Source of the DNA: Blastocladiella emersonii ATCC 22665
Lineage: Eukaryota > Fungi > Blastocladiomycota
NCBI GenBank assembly: GCA_025594325.1
Contig: JANHCV010000005.1
Location: 1,550,001-1,614,000, forward strand
DNA length: 64,000 bases
Direction: 5' to 3'
Part shown: positions 34,694 to 49,622 of the stretch, piece by piece
Layout: each line of letters opens with the position of its first letter
Numbering within the stretch: the first letter of the stretch is position 1
Program-made: the position numbers and the translations under genes
The notes under the pieces: generated by a model
The model's database searches: none
What the model was told of the DNA's origin: nothing
What the model saw: the letters and a program-made list of their open reading frames with translations, nothing else

Positions 34694-37605
34694 ATGTCCG
34701 CTACGCGCTTCACGCTCGGGCCCGCCCCCTTCACGACGCGCACATTTGTGGGCCGTCCCGCCGTCGGCAAGGTCGGCACGCCCGTCCGCGTCGTCGCCAA
34801 CCACTACGCGCTCTCGCTGCTCAACAACATCACCGTGCACCACTACGACGTGGTCATCTCGCCCGAGCCGACCAAGTCGCTCGCGCGCAAGGTGTGGGCC
34901 GAGTGGGAGCGCGCGCACGGCGCCAAGCTCGGCGTCATGGCCGCCTACGACGGCGTCAAGAACCTGTTCGCGCCCAAGCCGCTGCCCCAGGACCACATGC
35001 AGTTCGACGTTGTGCTGCCCGCCACGACCGAGGGCAAGCGCGCCAAGGAGTTCAAGATGACCGTCAAGCTCGCCTCGACCATCAACCGTACGCTCTCTCG
35101 CTCCCTGCGCTCGTCCTCGCCGATCCGCTATTGACTCTCTTTGCGCGTGTAGTGAGCGAGCTGACCTCGTTCCTCGACAAGCGCACCTCGCTGTCCAACA
35201 ACGTCCTGACCTCGATCATGGCGCTCGACGTCGTGTTCCGCCAGTCGCCCCTCAAGCGCATGCTGGTACGCTATCTTCGCGTTTCTCCGTGTCAGAAACC
35301 GACTCTGACACCGCCCATTCTCTAGCCTGCCGGCCGCTCGTTCTTCGACCCGACGTCGCGCCCGGTCGACCTCGGCGGCGGCCTCAACCTGCTGTCGGGC
35401 CTGTTCATGTCGGTGCGCCCGGGCGTCGGCACCATGACGCTCAACACCGACACGGCGTACACGGCCTTCTACAAGCCGCTGCCCATGGTCGAGTTTGCGC
35501 GCGAGGTGCTCGGCCGCGCCATGCCGCCCGCCACCCAGGAGCTCATGCCGCGCGACCTGATCCGCCTCGAGAAGATGGTCCGCCTGCTCGTCGTCGCGGT
35601 CAAGCACCGCGGCGCCCTCAACCCGCGGTTCCGCGTGCTCAAGCTCACGCGCACGTCGGCCGCCAAGACCAAGTTCACGCTGTCGCCGCCCGCGCCGCCC
35701 GCCGAGGGTGCCGCGGCGGCGCCTCCCGCTGGTGCTACGAGCTCGCCGGCCAAGGGCGGCAAGAAGGGCGCCGCCGGCAAGGGTGCCGCGGGTGCTGCTC
35801 CCGCTGGTACCGGTGGCGTCAGCGGGGCTACGGCGGCGCTCGCGCGCCTAACGGTCGGCGGCAAGCCGCGCGAGGTCACGGTCGCCGAGTACTTCGCCGC
35901 GGCCTACAACCTCAAGCTGCAGTACCTGAACCTGCCGTGCCTCGTCGTTGGCACGCCGCAGCGGCAGACGTACCTGCCCATGGAGGTGGCCGTCATCGAC
36001 GCCGGCCAAAAGTACCGCGGCAAGCTGTCCGAGGACCAGACGTCCAACGTCATCAAGATCGCGGCCAAGAAGCCGCTCGAGCGCATGGCGCAGCTTAAGC
36101 AGCTCATCTCGACCACGGCCAACCTCGCGTCGGACCCGTACCTGCAGGCGTTCGGCGTCAAGGTCGCGCCCGAGCTCATGTCGGTGCAAGGCCGGTTCCT
36201 GTCGACGCCCAAGCTGCAGATCGGCGGCAACAAGATGACGGTGCCGCGCGACGGGTCGTGGAATTTCGCCAACGCGCGCGTCGCAGCGGGCGCGCGTATC
36301 TCGTCCATCGGCGTGCTTAGCTTCGCCGACCCGCGGTACCTGCCCGAGGAGCGCGTCGAGGAGAAGATGGACGCGCTGTTCAACATGTGCGAGAAAATGG
36401 GCCTCGTCTTCAACCCGAACAAGAAGACGAAGACGACATACCCGATCCGATCGGCGCGCACGGGCCGCGGCGGGTTTGGGCCCGAGGCCATCAAGACGGC
36501 GCTGTTCGAGATTTACAACGAGACCGAGGCCACGTTCGGGCAACGGCCCGACATCATCGTCGTGATTCTGCCGCGCAAGGAGACGGCGCTGTACGCAGAG
36601 ATCAAGCGCGTCGGCGACATTGAGCTCGGTGTCCCGACGCAGTGCCTCGTCCAGGCCAAGATCGAGCGCGCCAACGAGCAGTATTGGGCCAACGTCGTCC
36701 TCAAGGTCAACGTCAAGGTGCTCGGTGCCGGCGCCGCGGTCCCGGCCACGACCAACTTTTCGCTCGCCCAGTCCAAGTACATTGGCGCAGGCGAGTCGGT
36801 CATGCTCGTCGGCGCCGACGTGTCGCACCCGTCGCCCGGCGCCGGCCACGCGTCGATCGCGTCCATGGTCGCCACCATGGACCCCAAGTGCGCGGGCCGA
36901 TACTCGGCCGAGGTGCGCGCGCAGCCGTCGCGCCAGGAGGAGATTGCGGACGTGCGTGGCATGTTCGCGGCGCTGCTGCGCCGGTACTACCTCGCCAACA
37001 AGAACACGTTCCCCAAGAAGATTATCGTGTACCGCGACGGCGTGTCCGAGGGCCAGTTCGACATTGTGCTCAAGGGCGAGCTCGAGGGCATCCGGTCCGT
37101 GCTCAAGAAGGCGGGCGCGTACGAGCAGACGCGCATCACGTTTATCACGGTCCAGAAACGCCACCACACGCGCTTCTTCGCGACCAACCCGGGCGACAAC
37201 GACCGCTCGGGCAACCTCAAGGCCGGCCTCGTCGTCGACACGGGCGTCACGCACCCGACCGACTTCGACTTTTTCCTGCAGTCGCAGGCCGGCCTGCAGG
37301 GGACCAGCCGCCCGACGCGCTACGCGGTCCTGCACGACGAGAACAACTGGACGGCCGACGACCTACAGCTCTTCACCTACCACCTCTGCTACACATACGC
37401 GCGGTGCACGCGCAGTGTCAGCGTCGCGCCGCCCGCCTACTACGCGCACCTCGTCGCCTTCCGGTCGCGCCACCACCTGCTCTCGTCCGAGTCCATGTCC
37501 GACACGGCGTCCGTGTCCACGGCGCGCTCGGGCGACAAGGACGCGCCCGTCCCCGAGCTCGCCAAGGTGCACGCGAACCTCGCCGCGTCCATGTACTACA
37601 TGTGA
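34694..37605 (+). CDS. AGO: Argonaute (N-L1-PAZ-L2-MID-PIWI), 3 exons
   Basis: VANHY, YDG..NLF, GLFMSVRP, YLPMEV, PTQC, GADVSHP, RQEEI, IVYRDGVSEGQ, QKRHHTRFF, GTSRPTRY, YTYARCTRSVS, PPAYYAHL; two gtacgc..tag introns. Confidence 0.97.
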
Positions 37606-38083
37606 CCGTTCTCTCCCTCTCGTTGATGTTGTTGATGGAAATGAATTTCCTCGTGACGTTGAATCAAGTTTTCCGCTTCGCGTTGATCTCTCCTGTCACT
37701 TCAGCATGCGTGTCATGAGGTGAGTGCACTGGGCGAGTTTTGACCGTAGGGCGGTCAAGGACTTCAAGAGAGCTAGCTGCCATGAAAACTCTCTTGACGA
37801 TGCACGCCCGCAACACTACCGTCGGCACACGCGTCGTTCAAACACACCTGACCCACGTGATATCAAAACGCGTCTCAACAGTTTGGGACACAGTGACGAG
37901 GGAGAACAGAGCGAAGGTGTCGAATATCGTGTATCGAGCTCGGATATGAGGCAGTGAACGGCCACAGGTCCCGATGGTCACTGGGAAACGCAGCTCGCTG
38001 TCGCAAGACTTTGCGCCCCCGCAGCGAAGGACGCAACTGACATGCTATTTACAAAGCAAACAACAAAAATTGGAGGTAAAGTA

Positions 38084-38309
38084 CACTGGCCGATAATGCG
38101 GCCGAACGAGGGTCACCCGGCCCAGTAGGGCAAGGGCACCTCGCAGCTGGGCTCGCTGCTACTATTCGAGCCACCGCCCCGCCGTTGACCCCAAACACAG
38201 TGCGTGCTCGTGGTCTTGGCAAAGGAAGTACGGACGTGCGGACACGATGCGTGTCACACGCTCCGACCCAGCTGGTGGATGGTGAGGGAAGGAGGAAGGA
38301 CGGCTTGGA
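38084..38309 (-). ncRNA. Candidate Fanzor omegaRNA scaffold / element right end
   Basis: Non-coding GC-rich tail right after the stop, with several stems: 38267-38274/38144-38151, a hairpin at 38232-38264, 38139-38143/38107-38111 and 38099-38103/38088-38092. Confidence 0.5.
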
Positions 38310-39260
38310 CTACTCGACCGTGGGCGTGGTGCGGCGCTTGCGGTGGTAGCGGTGCTTGGGGCGGGCGGCGGTCAGCGGGTTGCCATCCGCGTCCTTGGCC
38401 TGGCCCTCGAAGATGAGCCGCTTGATGGCGAACGAGAGGATGTTCACGGCCGCGTTGCGGTCACGCTGCACGCGGACGCCGCAGCGACGGCACGCGCGTG
38501 TCTGGTACACCTTCTTGTTCTTCTTGCCGAGCAGGTTGGTCTTGTCGGCCTTGGCGGCGGCGGGGTCGGCCATGGCGCGCGCGGCGCACCACTTGCTCGA
38601 GAAGCTCTCGTCGACGGCGTACACGGTGACGCCGCGCGAGCGCAGCTCCTTGACCATCTCGACCACGGGCCCTTGTTGGCCGCCGAGATCATGCCGAAGC
38701 CCGAGAAGTTGCGGCCGATGAGCACGACGTGGCCGCGCAGCGCGCGGGCGAGGTCGGCCCAGAACGCCTTGCGGCGGCCCTCGTTGGTGAACTTGGTGCT
38801 GTACACGCCGTGGCTGCAGCTCTCCTCGACCTTGGCCTCCATGTACTCGGTGCCGACCCGAGCGACCGCGCGGTGGTCTCCGGCAACGCACGAGTGAGCT
38901 GCATCGCCTGGTACGAGGCCCGCCTTGGCGCGCGGCGCCTTGCGCTGCTCGCGGGCCTGGTCGGTACCGGCGTGGTGGTGGAACTCGCGACTCGACAGCG
39001 ACCGAAACAGCGGCCGAGTCAGGACGACGCGCGAGACCGCCGACCGAATGTACGCCTTGAGCACCTCGGACCACGGGCCGTCGCCGCCGTCGGCCGCCCA
39101 GTACGCGAGGTACTGGAGCCGCCGGAACAGGCGCGCGAGCTCGAACGGCACGACGAAGCCGGTGAGGAAGTCGCGCACGCCAGCGTCGATGACGAACATG
39201 GGCTGGCCGTAGCGGATGACAACCTTCTTCTTGTGCGACTCGATCTTGTCGCGACCGCCG
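38310..39260 (-). pseudogene. Fanzor (TnpB-family RNA-guided endonuclease), C-terminal ~316 aa, one frameshift
   Basis: RuvC-I FVIDAGVRDFLTG (D 39185-39187), LSSREFHHHAG, KFTNEGRRKAF, VVLIG, RuvC-II VYAVDESFSSKWC (E 38607-38609), CRRC zinc knuckle, RuvC-III QRDRNAAVNIL (D 38460-38462); -1 frameshift at ~38668-38671. Confidence 0.88.
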
Positions 39261-39896
39261 GTAGAAGCGGTCGCGGGCCTCGAGCAAAGCATCGACGGAA
39301 CAGTCGACGCCAAGCCAGGCGCGCCAGCAGAGGCGGATTTCGTCCCGAGTCGCTTCATTTACAATTCGAAGGGACGACCCAGTAAGCCAATCTATGTCCA
39401 CGCAAGCGCGCAGCTGCTCGTTCCAAAAGTCGCGAACCTCGGGGTCGAGTACGATCGAGTACCAGAGCTGCCCGACGTAGCGCGTAAGCGTGGACAAGTC
39501 GAGTTTATCGGCTGAAGTGAAAGTGATGGCATGCAGAATGAGAAGGTTGCACGCGAGAACCTCGGACTGCCAGTCATTGAGCGTGAAGAAGAGCGTTGCG
39601 GTGGCGCCCTTTGCTGCGGCCTCAGTCACGGTGCACGCGACTTCGGCCAGATCGCCGCAACCGCACACGAGTGCCTGAAGATCAAGTCGTGTGCAAGGGT
39701 CGTGGTAGAGAAACAACTCACGCGGCGGTAGGCGGCGAAACGGGCGGAAGTTGTCGCCACGACCCCAGCGGTACGGCGTGCGGCACGTCAGCAGGGTCGG
39801 AGTCGGCGCGTCGGGTCTGTCGACGACAATAGCTGAGGTGGTTTGGAATACATTGCTGCCAGTGGCGGGCGCCTTCATTCGCTTCTTTGCTTTCAT
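39261..39896 (-). pseudogene. 3'-truncated DUF4470-family gene
   Basis: MKAKKRMK..LTCR..LVCGCGDLAE..LNDWQSEVLACNLLILHA..CWRAWL, colinear with the first ~215 aa of 42849..45935; similarity stops at EARDRFY. Confidence 0.8.
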
Positions 39897-40218
39897 TGTT
39901 GCGCGCAGGGGGAGAGCGAACGGCTTTGCCAGCGGAGTGCGACTTGTGGTACGCCACACTCTCGATCGGCCTGTCATTCCTCTCAACTTTTGGCCGGTGG
40001 CGCAGCGCGTCGCTCGCAGCCCCACGCCCCGATTCGTCTCGTCCCAACTGACTGTGTGGTTGCGAGAATCAAAGCAGAGCGACGGATTACGTGCGCAGAC
40101 GTGGCCAGTTGGTGTAGGCACGCGTCACAACGGAGGAACTGCGAGCGGGGTCGAGCAACGATTTTGACTATCGAACGAGTTCATGTATGTATTGGTATTC
40201 TAGCCGAAAATGGAGTAT

Positions 40219-42848: not shown

Positions 42849-45800
42849 ATGGCTGCAAAGAAGAAGAAGACGAAAGCTAATGGAACTTCCGGCAACAGCC
42901 GGACGCTCGGCTCGCCAGTGCTGACCTGCCGTCCGCGCATCTGCGACGAGCAGTCGGACGTCTTTCGGCCCTGCAACACGGCTCATCCGCGAGACCTATT
43001 GATGTACCACTACGTCGTTGGTGGCGAATCGTTCCGAAAGTACACACCCGATGACTACGGCCATGCCAGCCTCCTGGTCGTTGGTTGCGGCGATCTTCGC
43101 GACCTTGCGCGCACTGTGCAGGACGACCAAGTGAAATTCGGTGCCGCCGACCTTCGTTTCTTGCTCAACGATATCCGCCCCGAGGTGCTTGCGCGCAACT
43201 TGCTCATCCTTCACGCCGTCTCCACGAGCGCCATGGTCGACGAGTCTCTTGCGCGCCACGTTGCTCAGCTTTGGTTCTCGCTGTTCCTCGAGCCCGAAAC
43301 CCGTGCTTTCTGGGAAGCCAATATGCGTGCCTGTCTCGACGTGGACTGGGCCGAGTCTTCCGCGGCTTCGCTCTCGACCTTTGACGACGAGACGCTGCGC
43401 GCCGTACGCCACTGCTGGCGCTCGTGGCTCAACGTCGGCTGGTCCGTCGAGACGCTCCTCGAACATCGGACGCGGTACATCGAGTCGCATTGGGACCCGG
43501 CCATTCGCGACGCCACCGCGAAGCACCTTGCGCAGGGCTACGTCGAGCGGAATCTGGCGCGCTTCGGCAAGCACTTGGCGCGGGCGCGCGCGAGCCGGAT
43601 CGCGTGCACGGCCGAGCGCCCCGCCACCGACCGCACCTTTGCGGTCAACCCCGCCTCCGTTTCGGCAGCAGTTGTCAACCCGACCTTCCTGCTCGCTCGC
43701 GCCAATGGCACCGTGTACTACGCGGTGCCGGATCTCGCTCTTCCGTTCGAATCGCTCGACATCAACGTCACGACCGAATCGCCCGACTTGCGCTTGCTCG
43801 ACGACGTTTGGGACTGGACCACGGCCCTTCATGCGGCCTTTGGTCGCGACGCGAGGCCTCGGCACAAACTGTCGGTCGCGGTCGGCCACGCGGTTTGCTT
43901 CATGGAACAGCTCGCAGCGGACCCGGAACAGCGCTTTGACGTTGTGGACACGAACAACCTCCAGGACTCGGTCGGCCTGCTCAACGTCCTCGTTCACTCA
44001 ACCGCGCTCCTCAAGCCTTCACACCGCTTTGGGCCTGGGGGCCCAGTTATTTTCACCTACTCGACTCGCGCCGCTCAAATCGCTTCTGGCCAGAAAGCGT
44101 ACCTGGATGCGGCGACTGGACTTCCCACTGAGTTGTTCCAAACGCTTTTTGGTGTTGGGCTTCTCGAGCAACCTGCGGACGGAGACTGGATAAACCTTGT
44201 CAGCCATTTCTATGATCACGACGAAACCGTTCATCAGCGCGTCCAGTACTTGAGTTTCTCCCAGCTCGCGTCCCCGACAGTTCCTATCTCAATTGCAAAC
44301 TCGCCCTTCCTTCGCGAAGCTCTCATCCGTTGCGCAGCTCACTTCGACGCATCGCCGCCGGGTATGTCATCCTCGCTCACGGCGAGTAACCGCGGCGGAC
44401 TCACTGACACTCGAGTAACTGCTGTAGCCGCTCCTTACGGCAACTGCGCGATTATCCCGAAGCTCATTGCGGTTGCGCTTGCAGCGGGCCGGCTCACTTG
44501 GTCGGGGGCCAAGCAGGCCGCTTCGCCCTCAACGAGCTTACCACCTGAATTCTGGACGAAGCTTTTCGATTCGATGCCGTGCAGCCAGGTCGAGATGTCG
44601 AACGCTGTTTCGCTCTTTGGCCTCGAAGAGAAGAGTGACGGCAAGCAGCACGTTTGTTTTGAGTTCAACTTGCCACTTGATGACAACGCGACGGCCAGGA
44701 CGCCGCCGCCGCCGTCGTACTTGACGGCCATCGTCACGGCTCGCGATCAATCTTATCAATTCAGTTCGCTCGTCTTCGAGCTGTCGCCATCCGACTCGCG
44801 GGTTGCGCTCGTCAAGCTCTTCATGTCGCAGCACCTTGCGCGACGCTTCGCCGCCGGCGCGAATGTGAGCTTCCATCGCCAGTTTGTGGTGGTCCCAGGC
44901 GTCCATGCTCAGCCGAGCGAGCTTCTTGGCGGTCTGCCCGTTCCGCTCTCGTCAGCGGTCGTGACGCGAGTCCCATGTAATACCTTCCACGCGTTGGCTC
45001 GCGGCGTTCTGGCTTCTCGCAAGCCGCCAAAGGGTGCACCAAAGACCCCGGTGTTGCTCCCGGTCACGCACGCTGCCGACTTTCCTGATCGAATTGAGCT
45101 CACTCTGGCCATTCCGAAGCGCGAGATCAATGCTGCCATCAAGCGAGCTTCGGCAAATGGTGAGAGGGCAGCCTTTGGGGCTGCCGGGATCTCAGTCGGC
45201 AGCACCAGCGTTGTCGAAGTGCTCTACTTCCTTCCGTCGCGTGTGATCATGTCTGACGTTGTCGTTTCGCGGGCCCAACGTTCAGTTCTTGTCGTTCTCA
45301 AACGGGCACTTGGTCGAGGCTACTTTGAATCTGGTATCTTTTGTATGCCGCCCAGGGTTGGGCGCATCAAGAAGTGTCGGGTTACTGATCTCCCGATGCA
45401 GCTTGCCCTCAATCAAACTGTTTCCACCGAGATTGGTGATGCCTTCGCGGGGACGGAAGAACATGCTCTCGCCAAGCTTACTCTTGAGTTGTTCAAGGCT
45501 TTGTTTACCTCGGCGGCCGACCCGGTCACGCGGCTCATCGAGATCAAGTCGAGCAGGGACGAGGATGTGCTCGCCGTCATTATTCCCAACAATCTGGCGC
45601 TTGCGCCGCCGGCGGGTCCCGGGCTCGCGCCGATCCCGGTCATCGAGTGCTCCCTGGCTCACGCGCCCAAGTTCTATCTTGGGTCGTACAACAAACCCAC
45701 CCCCGATCCTCCGATTTTACTCTCGACAGCGAGGGATCACTTCCCTGCCGCTGCAGTGCGGTCGCTCACATTTGAGTCAAGTGACGACCATTTTCATCAG

Positions 45801-45935
45801 ATCTGTCTCTTCTTTTCCTTTGGGTCTCCAACACTCTCCGCCCCACCCTTGGATTCTCGCTTCCCGCCCGAATTCTACGCGCGCCTGCAACCCAACCTCA
45901 TCGACTTGCGGATCCTCCCCTTCACCCCGATCTAG
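42849..45935 (+). CDS. DUF4470-domain protein (1028 aa)
   Basis: LLVVGCGDLRDL, FLLNDIRPEVLARNLLIL, FDVVDTNNLQDSVGLLNVLV motifs typical of DUF4470 proteins; single long ORF. Confidence 0.72.
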   Translation: MAAKKKKTKANGTSGNSRTLGSPVLTCRPRICDEQSDVFRPCNTAHPRDLLMYHYVVGGESFRKYTPDDYGHASLLVVGCGDLRDLARTVQDDQVKFGAADLRFLLNDIRPEVLARNLLILHAVSTSAMVDESLARHVAQLWFSLFLEPETRAFWEANMRACLDVDWAESSAASLSTFDDETLRAVRHCWRSWLNVGWSVETLLEHRTRYIESHWDPAIRDATAKHLAQGYVERNLARFGKHLARARASRIACTAERPATDRTFAVNPASVSAAVVNPTFLLARANGTVYYAVPDLALPFESLDINVTTESPDLRLLDDVWDWTTALHAAFGRDARPRHKLSVAVGHAVCFMEQLAADPEQRFDVVDTNNLQDSVGLLNVLVHSTALLKPSHRFGPGGPVIFTYSTRAAQIASGQKAYLDAATGLPTELFQTLFGVGLLEQPADGDWINLVSHFYDHDETVHQRVQYLSFSQLASPTVPISIANSPFLREALIRCAAHFDASPPGMSSSLTASNRGGLTDTRVTAVAAPYGNCAIIPKLIAVALAAGRLTWSGAKQAASPSTSLPPEFWTKLFDSMPCSQVEMSNAVSLFGLEEKSDGKQHVCFEFNLPLDDNATARTPPPPSYLTAIVTARDQSYQFSSLVFELSPSDSRVALVKLFMSQHLARRFAAGANVSFHRQFVVVPGVHAQPSELLGGLPVPLSSAVVTRVPCNTFHALARGVLASRKPPKGAPKTPVLLPVTHAADFPDRIELTLAIPKREINAAIKRASANGERAAFGAAGISVGSTSVVEVLYFLPSRVIMSDVVVSRAQRSVLVVLKRALGRGYFESGIFCMPPRVGRIKKCRVTDLPMQLALNQTVSTEIGDAFAGTEEHALAKLTLELFKALFTSAADPVTRLIEIKSSRDEDVLAVIIPNNLALAPPAGPGLAPIPVIECSLAHAPKFYLGSYNKPTPDPPILLSTARDHFPAAAVRSLTFESSDDHFHQICLFFSFGSPTLSAPPLDSRFPPEFYARLQPNLIDLRILPFTPI

Positions 45936-46420
45936 CGCTCTTGGGTCCCGTGGTGCTGTTTCCGGTGTTCGGGCGTTTTGCTATGAAGTTAATACATGTT
46001 CGCTGTTTACGTAAGTTAAGCGTGTGCAAGGACCGTCGTGCTCGTGCTTTTCGCAGTCGCGGTGGAAGACGGATGGGGCGTTCAGCATCAGCCGGCCAGC
46101 ATCGTGGACGCGCGCGTCTCTCTTCGCGTGATTCTCGGGCTCGCGTTCGCGGCGCTCCACGAGGCTCAAGAACGCGTCAGCGGCTCCCGCATCACCGTCG
46201 TTCGCGTACCCGCTGAGAAGTGTTAAATCTTGGGCCTTTATGAGTTGAGTTGAGCTGGTTTGGCGGCCGGCGCGGTCGTGTCGAAATCGACGCATCGGCC
46301 GCTGCGAGACGAGTTGATGTGTTTGACAGGTCGCCACGCGACTTGCGAGCGGGTGCAAACTCGGCTGCACTTGGCCGGTGCGCCCGCGTTTCCGACCGCA
46401 GCTCCCCACCTCACAGAACC

Positions 46421-49400
46421 ATGGGAGCAAAGAAGAAGACGAAAGCTAATGTAACTACCGGCAAAGGCCGCGGACCTGCGCCGCCGCCGCCTGTCGACGA
46501 CGTGGGGCCGCCCTCAGGAGAGCAGCTCCCGCCGCCGCCCCTGACCTGTCGTTCGCGCACCTGTCACGAGCAGTCCGAGGAATACGCTCCCTATAGCCCG
46601 GCGCACGCGCGAGACCTTCTCATGTACGACGTCCCGTCGACGACTGAGCCGACACAGGTGCTCGCCCTAGCGTGCTGCGACCTCCGCGACGTTGCGCGGA
46701 CGGTCGCCGATGCGCGCACCAAGGATGACACGCGCGCGATTCACTTCTTGATCAACGACATTCGCCCCGAGGCGCTCGCTCGGAATTTGCTCATCTTACA
46801 CGCGGTCACCGAGCACGAGTCGGACGACGGCGAGCCGCTTTCTCGGCACGTTGCTCAGCTCTGGTACTCGCTCCTCCTCGAGCCCGAAACTCGCACTTTC
46901 TGGAACGGTCAGCTGCGCGCCTGCCTCGATCGCGACTGGACCGCCTCGTCCGCGGCTTCACTCTCGTTCTTCAACACGGACACTCTGCTTGCTGTGCGCA
47001 ACTGCTGGCAGTCATGGCTCAACGTCGACTGGTCTCTCGACACCCTGTTCGAGCAACGGGCACGGTACGTGCAGTTGCAGTCCCACTGGAGCTCAGTCGT
47101 CCGCGAAACGAACAGCACGACACTTGGCAAGTTCTACACCGAGCGCATGCGAGCTCGATTTGGCGAACATCTGACGCGGTCGCGCGATAGCCGCATCGCG
47201 TGCCTCGTCGAGCGCTTCGCCGCCGACCAGACGTTTGCCATCGACCCCGCCTGCACCGCTGCGCTTCTTGTCAATCCGACCTTTCTTCTCACGCGCGCCG
47301 ACGGAACCGTGTATTATGCCTTTCAGACTACTGCGCTGCCCTTCGAGTCGCTTGATGTTTACGTGGCTTCCGAGTCGCCGGAAGCGCGCTTGTTCGAGGA
47401 GGTCCGGGATCGGGTTGCAGCTCTTCGTGCAGCGTTTGGCCGCGACGCACAGCCCCAGCACCAAGTTTCTGCTGCTGTCGGCCACGCTATCCGATTCATG
47501 GAATTACTCGCCGCCGACCCCAAGATGCGATTCGACGTCATTGACACGGTCCGTCTTCAGGACTCGGTCGGACTGCTCAACGTGCTCGTCCACGCCTCGC
47601 CACTTCTCAAGCCGGCGCCTTGCACGCCGCAACGCCCGCATATCCTGTCAATGTCGGCCCTTCCTGGGACCGTTGGTCTCTCACGCGCTTTATATTTGGC
47701 TTCCTCGACGGGGCTCCCAATTGAATTTTTTTGCAACGCTTTTTGGGATTGGCTTGCTCGAGCTCCCCGAAGACGGGCACTGGCTTAACCTCGTCACAAA
47801 CCACGTCCAGTACAGCGATGCGGTGCACCAACGCGTTGAATACTTTTGATTTTACAAGCTTCCCGCGCCGACTGTTCCGATCTCGATTCGGCGGTCCCCG
47901 TTCCTCATTAATGCGCTCCTCACCTGCGCCACGACACTCGACTCACCCTCAACGCTCCGTGCGGTTATTTCATGTCAACTATGTGCCATGCACGGTCACT
48001 GACGCTGAGAGCGCATTGTAGTTGGTACGTACAGCACCGGCGCCGTCCTGCCAAAGCTGGTTTCGTTCGCGCTCGCCGCCGGCCGCATCGTGGACTCGGG
48101 CGCTGTTCCGACTTGGTCGCCGTCCAAGTGCTTCACCATTACGCTTTGGCCGATACTTCTGGAAGCGATGCCTCGCACTCGCCTCGAGACCGAAGTTACC
48201 TTGGCCCTCTACGGCGTGGGCCACAGCGGCAAAACCCATCAAGGCAGCTGTTTCGAATTAACGCTCCCGCTTGGCAACAGTGCTTTTCTCCACCCTTCGT
48301 ACTTGAGCGTCGAGATCGCGATTGATGGCAAAACGCTCCAGCTCAACTCCATCAATGTCGAGACGCTTCCACTTGAACCTCGAAGCGTGCGCATCAAGTT
48401 TTACCTCACTGACGATGTTGCCAAGTTGGCTCAAAACGCCTCGCTTGGCGTTTATCGCGATTTCATCTCCACCCTTGGTGACCGTGGTCCGACTCGCGAG
48501 CTGCTTGGCGGGCAGCTCGTTCCGTTTTCCTTGAAGAAGGGAAGCGAGAGTGGACTAAAACGCATGTGCCATGACACAGCGATTACTCCAACTCTCCCCC
48601 TCACTCGAGCACTTTCCTCGCTGACGGCAACTCCAGTTCCAACGAACGCGTTCCTTGGTCCCGCTCGCGGTATCTTTGCGGCTCGCGACCCGTACGACGC
48701 GGTGCTGGACAAGCTGACTCTTCCGGTCGCTCACGCCGCTGATCACATGGATCGCGTCGAACTTACGCTTACCATTCCGCCACGTGCACGCTTCTCCACG
48801 ATTGAGCAGCCCGTCGGGCCAGAGGTACCGCCTAGCCGCGGTGCAGTCGCGCTCATGATTTGCAACCGTGGCCGCAGCGAGTCCCAGGTGATGTGGTTGC
48901 CGTCGCCCGTGACCATTGCAAGTATCAACGTCTCGCGCGCCACACGCACGGTCCAAATCGTTCTCAAGCGCATTCTCGGGGCTGCACGCAGGCAGGCGGG
49001 GCTCGTGCGCCCGCTGCCCAGGTTTGGGCGTGGGAGAACTTTCCTCCCGAGCGAGCTTCCCATCCAACTTGCGCTCAAACGCATCGCGGGACTTGGGATC
49101 GGCGACATGTTTCAAAACCTTGTATCTCGGCGACCTGTTCATTTCGCGATCGAGACGATCAAGACCATCTTTGATCTGGCCGCGGACCCGACCACGCGTC
49201 TCATCGAGGTTTCTATGCAGGAATCCGGGCTTGTCATTGGACTTGTGATTCCGCGGCAGCTCATTCTTCTCCCACCCGCGGGTCCAGGGATCGAGCCGAT
49301 TCCGGCGCTCAAGTGCGCCATCGCCTTTGCCCCTCACGCCCAACCGCTGTTTCCAGCGGCCCTCGCACAGCTTTCCGCTTCCGCCGTTGGCTCCGTCAAG

Positions 49401-49622
49401 TTCCAGACGAGGGACAACGCGATCATATTCGCGGAACTTTGCGTCACCATTCTCACAGGGACGGGAAGCCGGCCCGCCCCGACCACCGATCCGCACTTCC
49501 CGGCCGAAGTTTATGCGCTGCTGCAGCCCCATCTCCCAAGACGATGCTCCTGCCATTTGCCCCGGTCCGACACACCTGATCCATCCAATATTTGCCTCCT
49601 TGATTGTACCCGACCCCTCTAG
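46421..49622 (+). pseudogene. DUF4470-domain paralog, disrupted
   Basis: Colinear with 42849..45935; +1 frameshift in the T7 run (~47726-47732), in-frame TGA at 47847-47849, probable intron ending at ~48020. Confidence 0.72.

Follow-up and report, generated by a model that had tools for sequence, protein, structure and literature searches.

A very probably dead Fanzor1 copy of a family multiplied in Blastocladiella emersonii, joined to a truncated DUF4470 gene

Does the protein-like sequence that lies across two overlapping minus-strand open reading frames (38310..40121, here frame A, and 38444..39358, frame B) in the genome of Blastocladiella emersonii ATCC 22665 derive from an RNA-guided nuclease, and could it still cut DNA? 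Fanzor1 is a TnpB-like, RNA-guided RuvC endonuclease of eukaryotes. Its presence in zoosporic fungi, among them Allomyces macrogynus, a blastoclad, has been known since 2013 (PMC3627910). The Allomyces Fanzor1 families, AMa, belong to the same phylum, Blastocladiomycota, and to the same protein class as the sequence described here (PMC3627910, Table 1 of that paper), while a search of the literature returned no paper pairing Fanzor with Blastocladiella. Our analysis of the window, the whole stretch of 64,000 nucleotides in which this locus lies, indicates that the minus-strand segment 39263-38043 is very probably a dead Fanzor1 copy, one of a family whose members have multiplied in B. emersonii. 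The features of the locus are collected in Table 1.

Table 1. Features of the Fanzor1 fragment and of its paralogous loci. Positions are those of the window unless given as L003 coordinates.
Feature	Position	Strand	Basis
Whole Fanzor1 fragment, 5'-truncated, 3' end intact	38043..39263	-	Homology to paralogous loci L001-L006; blastn
DUF4470 gene, N-terminal ~211 codons, truncated at the Fanzor junction; not Fanzor	39264..39896	-	Pfam PF14737, E 3.9e-10
Frame B coding piece, starting shortly upstream of RuvC-I and ending shortly after the RuvC-II position	38666..39259	-	Translation
Frame A coding piece: alternative Glu, zinc knuckle (TNB), RuvC-III, basic C-terminal tail, stop	38310..38672	-	Pfam, NCBIfam
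RuvC-I catalytic Asp (FVIDAGV)	39185..39187	-	Family column DPG/DAG aligns with SpuFz1 D383
Gly at the canonical RuvC-II Glu position (VVLIG)	38714..38716	-	Aligns with Gly of SpuFz1 'VVMGD'
Frameshift site, CCC against CCCC in paralogues; frame A downstream	38667..38669	-	Four-way DNA alignment
Alternative (rearranged) RuvC-II Glu (AVDES)	38607..38609	-	Aligns with SpuFz1 E541
Arg (CGC) in place of the first zinc-knuckle pair's second Cys (CAAC to CAAR)	38577..38579	-	TGC to CGC
RuvC-III catalytic Asp (QRDRNAAVNIL)	38460..38462	-	Aligned to RD motif of TnpB, Cas12f, LaTranC (PDB searches)
3' tail of about 265 nt, conserved and non-coding, with the end ...GTAAATAGCA	38043..38309	-	Alignment with paralogue tails
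Homology start of L006	L003 coordinate 7082		
Homology start of L001	L003 coordinate 7279		
Homology start of L002	L003 coordinate 7400		
Homology start of L004	L003 coordinate 7597		
Homology start of the window copy	L003 coordinate 7748		
Homology start of L005	L003 coordinate 8201		

Translation of the three minus-strand frames showed that the meaningful protein sequence changes frame twice. The upstream part of frame A encodes a DUF4470-like N-terminus and ends at about 39264; frame B then carries GGRDKIES...FVIDAGV...VVLIG...ISAANKGP from 39259 to 38666, and frame A continues with GPVVEMVKEL...AVDES..SKWCAAR...CRRCG..QRDRNAAVNIL up to a stop codon at 38312-38310. The original prediction, made from the sequence by itself, had joined the two ORFs across one missing C, and both ORFs and the peptide strings it quoted were recovered in the two frames; the residue positions it named also proved correct. 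Its account of the long ORF holds for the Fanzor end and was otherwise incomplete, having missed that the upstream part is a separate, truncated DUF4470 gene.

Membership of the TnpB/Cas12 superfamily is carried by the C-terminal end. The piece 38313-38672 matches the Cas12f1-like TNB family of Pfam (PF07282) at 37.5 bits (E 2.6e-9; gathering score 26.3 bits), as do the paralogues, and the frame A C-terminal piece is matched by NCBIfam guided_TnpB (E 9.5e-8). These matches bear out the TnpB/Cas12 RuvC layout that had been read from the translated frames, and a profile search for the TnpB/OrfB zinc-ribbon family, proposed as a check, thus gave a hit above the cut-off. The order of residues typical of the superfamily, D ... 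zinc knuckle ... RD, is present in the fragment. Like ISDra2 TnpB and Cas12f, it has RuvC-I, RuvC-II, zinc knuckle and RuvC-III in that order and a TNB domain above the Pfam cut-off; unlike them, it lies in a eukaryotic host and has Gly where the canonical RuvC-II Glu would stand, the Glu being relocated about 36 residues downstream.

Assignment to Fanzor1 depends on the family to which the fragment belongs. A profile of the family matched SpuFz1 (8gkh, E 1.8e-6) and Parasitella PpFz1 (9cf0, E 5e-5) in the PDB, over a region running from WED to RuvC that contains TDG as well as the RuvC-I Asp, the Gly at RuvC-II and the alternative Glu, whereas TnpB and Cas12f were matched at the TNB end only. 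In the longer paralogues the TDG motif (F.G.I.TDG..V.V) aligns with 'HFEGSITTDGASVSV' of SpuFz1. The Fanzor/pro-Fanzor clade is marked by DPG together with the alternative Glu, and Fanzor1 by TDG in an enlarged WED domain (PMC10711439). The TDG region has been deleted from the window copy, so this Fanzor1 feature is found in the family and is absent from the fragment itself. When the paralogue P0001 was compared with solved structures as a single sequence, only a marginal match to LaTranC was obtained.

Structure prediction points the same way. An AlphaFold model of residues 185-788 of the paralogue P0003, built with a 19-row family alignment, is confident in the RuvC/TNB half only (pLDDT 77-91, against 58 overall). 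The N-terminal half, where the REC2 kinked-helix pair that embraces the heteroduplex in Fanzor1 would lie, has pLDDT below 50, and this region is absent from the fragment. In a Foldseek search of the PDB, ranks 1 to 4 were SpuFz structures (E 9e-6 to 7e-5) with a TM score of about 0.25, the model being weak overall; Cas12f, PpFz, mimivirus Fanzor2, GtFz and TnpB followed. The profile matches to SpuFz1 and PpFz1, TDG included, and the SpuFz structures as best Foldseek hits support the view that the family is Fanzor1, which agrees with the Fanzor1-like character originally proposed; the window copy itself lacks the Fanzor1-specific N-terminal features.

SpuFz1 from Spizellomyces punctatus (PDB 8GKH; PMC10432273) is both the best Fanzor profile match and the best solved structural match, and its host, like B. 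emersonii, is a zoosporic fungus. TDG in WED, DP(G/N) at RuvC-I, Gly at RuvC-II, the alternative Glu, a CxxC...CxxC knuckle and RD at RuvC-III are common to SpuFz1 and the family, although identity in the structural alignment is only about 14%. Compared with SpuFz1, the window copy is missing the whole WED/REC half and is frameshifted. A further difference is that SpuFz1 elements have terminal inverted repeats (TIRs) of 33 bp together with TA duplications (PMC3627910), none of which was found in the B. emersonii copies.

The active site of SpuFz1 was solved as D383, E541 and D606 (PMC10432273), and after correction for the offset of the MBP fusion the RuvC-I Asp and the alternative Glu of the family correspond to D383 and E541. 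Fanzors have Gly or Pro in place of the RuvC-II Glu and use a Glu further downstream (PMC10530073). This signature, an inert residue at RuvC-II with a downstream Glu, is seen in the fragment. In an alignment of 17 family members no variation is seen at the alternative Glu, at the RuvC-III Asp (D739), at three Cys or at one Asn, and the Gly at canonical RuvC-II is nearly invariant; the RuvC-I Asp heads the consensus DPG motif of the family, with an F.G...TDG motif upstream. Alignment to SpuFz1 thus supports a correspondence between the D/E/D residues of the fragment and the Fanzor active site. The claims that all three acidic residues are present and that the active site is of the rearranged Fanzor type, with Gly in VVLIG and a downstream Glu, both stand: the three codons are in place, and the arrangement fits published descriptions (PMC10530073; PMC10711439).

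However complete its acidic residues, the fragment carries three defects: a 5' truncation that removed WED and REC, a frameshift between the RuvC-II position and the alternative Glu, and the loss of a zinc ligand. The similarity to the family sets in abruptly at about 39263, corresponding to residue 481 of the 788-residue P0003, and from there the frame B piece is 93% identical to P0003 residues 481-678. The last 308 of about 788 codons are kept; WED, REC and the family start codon are gone. The Cys-to-Arg change is private to the window copy, the paralogues all reading CAAC in the alignment, and it leaves the C4 zinc knuckle incomplete (CAAR...CRRC) at a Cys that is invariant or nearly invariant across the family. 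A missing N-terminal part, probable inactivity and a first zinc pair reading CAAR, one change (TGC to CGC) from the norm, had all been foreseen. The WED/REC half is needed for holding the guide RNA and the target DNA. Because WED/REC, the reading frame and a zinc ligand have all been lost, this copy would be unable to cut DNA and, judged from its sequence, cannot be an active nuclease.

A search with the C-terminal piece found three proteins of B. emersonii ATCC 22665, each annotated as 'hypothetical protein', at 86-93% identity: P0001 (580 aa), P0002 (446 aa) and P0003 (788 aa). At the DNA level the loci L001-L003 share 92.8-94.3% identity with the fragment over ~1,215 bp (39261-38043, blastn), a similarity far beyond chance. 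An exhaustive phmmer search with P0001 against 1.84 billion representative sequences gave 22 matches, 19 of which were looked up: 17 were from B. emersonii (22-46% identity), one was metagenomic and one was a spurious plant match. The search thus found no close relative outside B. emersonii other than the one metagenomic protein, and its matches form about 20 clusters at 50% identity, nearly all from the ATCC 22665 genome. At least 11 copies of the fragment's own subfamily and about 15 more distant subfamilies occur in B. emersonii, so the fragment does mark a Fanzor family in this genome, as predicted. Pairwise dN/dS between copies is 0.34-0.51, a range that fits the budding of copies from master genes under selection. 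It shows that part of the divergence arose under selection, presumably in master copies, and is silent on the window copy. Among the four copies compared, the one in the window has diverged furthest (dS about 0.10 against about 0.05).

Within the subfamily, truncation at the 5' end is the rule. Ten of the 11 copies are cut at distinct points: besides the loci in Table 1, four more annotated copies begin at P0003 residues 339, 440, 454 and 680, and each runs to the C-terminus. L003 is the sole long copy, and carries a 24-bp in-frame deletion. The longest truncated copy, L006, begins just after the putative intron of L003, and no truncated copy spans this intron. All seven DNA loci end at the same 3' position (about L003 8932-8938), and in the six with aligned termini a common ...GTAAATA(N)GCA lies about 265 nt past the stop codon. 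Summed contig depth climbs towards the 3' end, depth not being the same as copy number.

In Fanzor and TnpB elements the tail specifies the scaffold of the guide RNA and forms the end of the element. In the fragment, the 3' tail is 93-95% identical to the tails of its paralogues, a conservation equal to that of the coding part, and its RNA fold has a z-score of -2.2 against shuffled sequences. Two conserved GC-rich hairpins are followed by a nearly invariant T-rich end; both hairpins, which sit 45-95 nt from the element end, are kept in L004 and L005, which represent a diverged subfamily, and one pair is compensatory. Rfam gave nothing relevant within 37500-40200. In other Fanzor1 elements the omega-RNA scaffold lies at the element 3' end (PMC10711439), and the tail analysed here fits a candidate omega-RNA scaffold and element end.

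Distinct 5' cuts in 10 of 11 copies together with a common 3' end suggest copying that would start at the 3' end and often stop early, and the 5' break of the window copy would then most likely be a birth defect of the insertion. One-ended rolling-circle copying of the Helitron2 type, the mechanism that may have operated here, has a published precedent. CRe-1, 2 and 3 of Chlamydomonas reinhardtii are non-autonomous Helitron2 elements (PMC3627910) that resemble the subfamily in having Fanzor1 as their sole ORF and in that most copies are variably 5'-truncated with intact 3' ends; this '3'-overabundance' of Helitron2-borne Fanzor1 was attributed to one-ended rolling-circle transposition (PMC3627910). 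Truncated CRe copies differ in having 7-19-bp target-site duplications after TTTT, which were not found in the B. emersonii copies. The CRe elements also have Helitron2 terminal repeats and hairpins; the hairpin expected of CRe-like elements, no more than about 30 bp from the 3' end, is not matched here. No inverted match of at least 9 bp, as expected of Helitron2-type asymmetric terminal repeats, was found between the region upstream of L003 and the tail, a weak test as the 5' boundary is undefined, and no RepHel partner was identified for the subfamily. Around none of the copies was there a serine recombinase or other transposase, nor a TIR or a target-site duplication. The truncation pattern is the one observation from which we infer rolling-circle copying.

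The main alternative for the truncation series is an origin through LINE activity. The 5'-truncated copies would then be retrocopies, made by target-primed reverse transcription of a Fanzor transcript. A fixed 3' end combined with 5' truncation of variable extent is the classical signature of LINEs and processed copies, and the conserved 3' hairpins could serve as a recognition site for a LINE of the stringent type. This origin is nevertheless unlikely: in the six of the seven DNA loci that were inspected (L001-L005 and the window copy) the terminus they share carries neither a poly(A) nor a microsatellite tail, the five copies tested have no target-site duplications, no transposase or reverse transcriptase ORF was found flanking L003, and no Fanzor-retroelement association has been published (PMC10711439; PMC3627910).

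It is also conceivable, though distinctly improbable, that the subfamily spreads without a transposase of its own by one-ended copying anchored at the 3' end. One example would be break-induced or synthesis-dependent copying primed at the guide-RNA end after a cut made by Fanzor. If true, such copying would routinely yield 5'-truncated, duplication-free insertions like the one in the window, and would be a new mobility mode for RNA-guided nucleases, distinct from hitch-hiking on Helitrons or LINEs.

Whichever way it was copied, the decapitated Fanzor is joined to a truncated DUF4470 gene. At both boundaries of the fragment (39224-39500 and 38000-38124) Logan contigs run across and show no differences. 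The DUF4470 piece shares 42% identity with a paralogue of 1028 residues encoded at 42849-45935, over that protein's residues 24-210, and the remaining ~800 codons were not found downstream of the Fanzor end. The Fanzor fragment may have been inserted in the DUF4470 gene or joined to it, and the order of events can only be proposed. A link between truncated Fanzor copies (the one in the window and L001) and DUF4470-type genes was considered and is weakened, since the gene upstream of L001 looks complete, small and P0020-like, with a domain that is fused to DUF4470 in one protein only. An exact-product look-up found no protein record for the AGO ORF or the DUF4470 ORF near the locus.

Across the junction runs a continuous ORF of 528 codons, which begins with an ATG at 39896, stops at 38310 and is made up of the DUF4470 N-terminus, ~197 out-of-frame Fanzor codons and the in-frame zinc-knuckle/RuvC-III end. 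Could this be a domesticated chimeric gene, in which the 1-nt deletion was kept as it restored a single ORF? The open stretch of frame A extends from 40121 to 38310, and its out-of-frame stretch 39260-38671 is free of stops in the window where the same frame has one to three stops in L001-L003, an outcome reached in only 3-6% of codon shuffles. However, a single synonymous difference removes the one stop of L002 and L003, so that chance suffices. The middle 197 codons would give an Arg/Pro-rich nonsense peptide, the zinc knuckle would lack one Cys, and no function is known for a TNB/RuvC-III end on its own; the exact-product look-up found no record of a gene with such a product. A domesticated gene is thus very unlikely, and the preferred reading remains that of a dead Fanzor1 copy next to a broken gene.

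The frameshift of this dead copy is the only coding indel private to it in the alignment with three paralogous loci, which read uninterrupted through ...ISAA(N/D)KGPVVEMVKEL.... The paralogues have CCCC where the window has CCC, which confirms the missing C placed in AAG GGC CC[C] GTG by the original prediction, and the frame-corrected sequence has no in-frame stop. Over this site only collapsed multi-copy, high-depth Logan contigs are available (from three DNA runs), and they carry the extra base of the paralogues. These contigs lack the private variants of the window copy, for example that at 38677, and are therefore not representative of the locus and silent on its frameshift. The assembly is based on about 185x PacBio HiFi reads and was polished with Pilon (PMC9730499). 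From this quality we infer that the deletion is genuine in the organism. That the frameshift is instead an assembly or polishing error, and the locus encodes a compact, N-terminally reduced nuclease, is extremely unlikely: the indel does sit in a homopolymer, every contig over the site has the extra base and the corrected frame is open, but the contigs are collapsed and differ at private SNPs, the assembly is deep HiFi, and restoring the base would still leave homology from residue 481 of 788, without WED/REC or the family start codon, and one zinc ligand lost regardless.

Taken by itself the locus is a pseudogene fragment, and its value is that of a marker. As a dead copy it belongs to a Fanzor1 subfamily that is new, divergent and lineage-specific, and it marks a large and very divergent Fanzor1 expansion in B. 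emersonii that is annotated only as hypothetical proteins. B. emersonii is under development as a model organism, and its intact paralogues could therefore supply new compact RNA-guided nucleases. The truncation series is the one feature that merits pursuit: clean, and with a fixed 3' end, it offers a tractable case for how 'solo' Fanzor1 genes move.

The stump of a DUF4470-family gene and the truncated, frameshifted Fanzor1 fragment that adjoins it are read by the same minus-strand frame, which passes from the stump through the out-of-frame Fanzor segment into the in-frame TNB end. This frame has no stops through the out-of-frame segment, and the result is one 528-codon ORF, the middle of which is nonsense. 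When codons were shuffled, the segment came out free of stops in 3-6% of the shuffles. Of the copies compared, that in the window alone is stop-free in this frame, with 1-3 stops found in the paralogues at loci L001-L003.

DUF4470-family genes are clustered in the window (n=3), and at least eight additional annotated members occur elsewhere in B. emersonii. The two ORFs of the broken gene can together be aligned end to end with the intact one.

Fanzor sequence has also been joined to other genes in the annotation. P0001, the annotated protein of L001, is a gene-model chimera of the flanking gene and the Fanzor fragment at that locus, and P0004 is likewise a gene-model chimera, its partner being a coiled-coil gene. 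One large protein, P0022 (1472 aa), has the domain of the L001 flanking gene as an N-terminal fusion to a DUF4470 region.

The Argonaute/PIWI-like gene beside the Fanzor fragment lies tail to tail with it, the 3' ends of gene and fragment being 440 bp apart; no sign of a functional link between the two was seen. The copies L004 and L005 form a sub-lineage, in which ~130 nt of the conserved 3' tail, directly past the stop codon, is exchanged for unrelated sequence. The last ~90 nt of the tail, comprising two hairpins and a T-rich end, is retained in both (72-74% identity).

Features in the window and at related loci of B. emersonii
Feature	Location	Strand	Remarks
Argonaute/PIWI-like gene	window 35407-37605	+	single ORF, 732 codons
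528-codon ORF	window 38310-39896	-	DUF4470 N-terminus, nonsense, Fanzor TNB end
DUF4470-family N-terminal stump	window 39264-39896	-	adjoins Fanzor fragment
DUF4470-family gene, intact	window 42849-45935	+	1028-codon ORF
DUF4470-family gene, broken	window 46250-49622	+	ORFs 46250-47788, 48090-49622
Gene related to P0020 and P0023	L001 5029-6207		upstream of truncated Fanzor copy
24-bp in-frame deletion	L003, homologous to window 38654-38631
3' tail region, sub-lineage	L004 6183-6312
3' tail region, sub-lineage	L005 4407-4547

Among the copies of the subfamily, the longest is that at L003 (P0003, 788 aa). It has lost 24 bp, in frame, from the stretch that separates the RuvC-II position from the alternative Glu, and its gene model requires a putative intron, accompanied by a frame change, near L003 7020-7093. 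Outside B. emersonii, a search of 1.84 billion representatives found a sole relative of this Fanzor1 family, P0024/P0039, a metagenomic protein of 590 residues from an 11-kb contig (ENA and Logan metagenome contigs), in which the TDG motif is kept, as is the alternative Glu.
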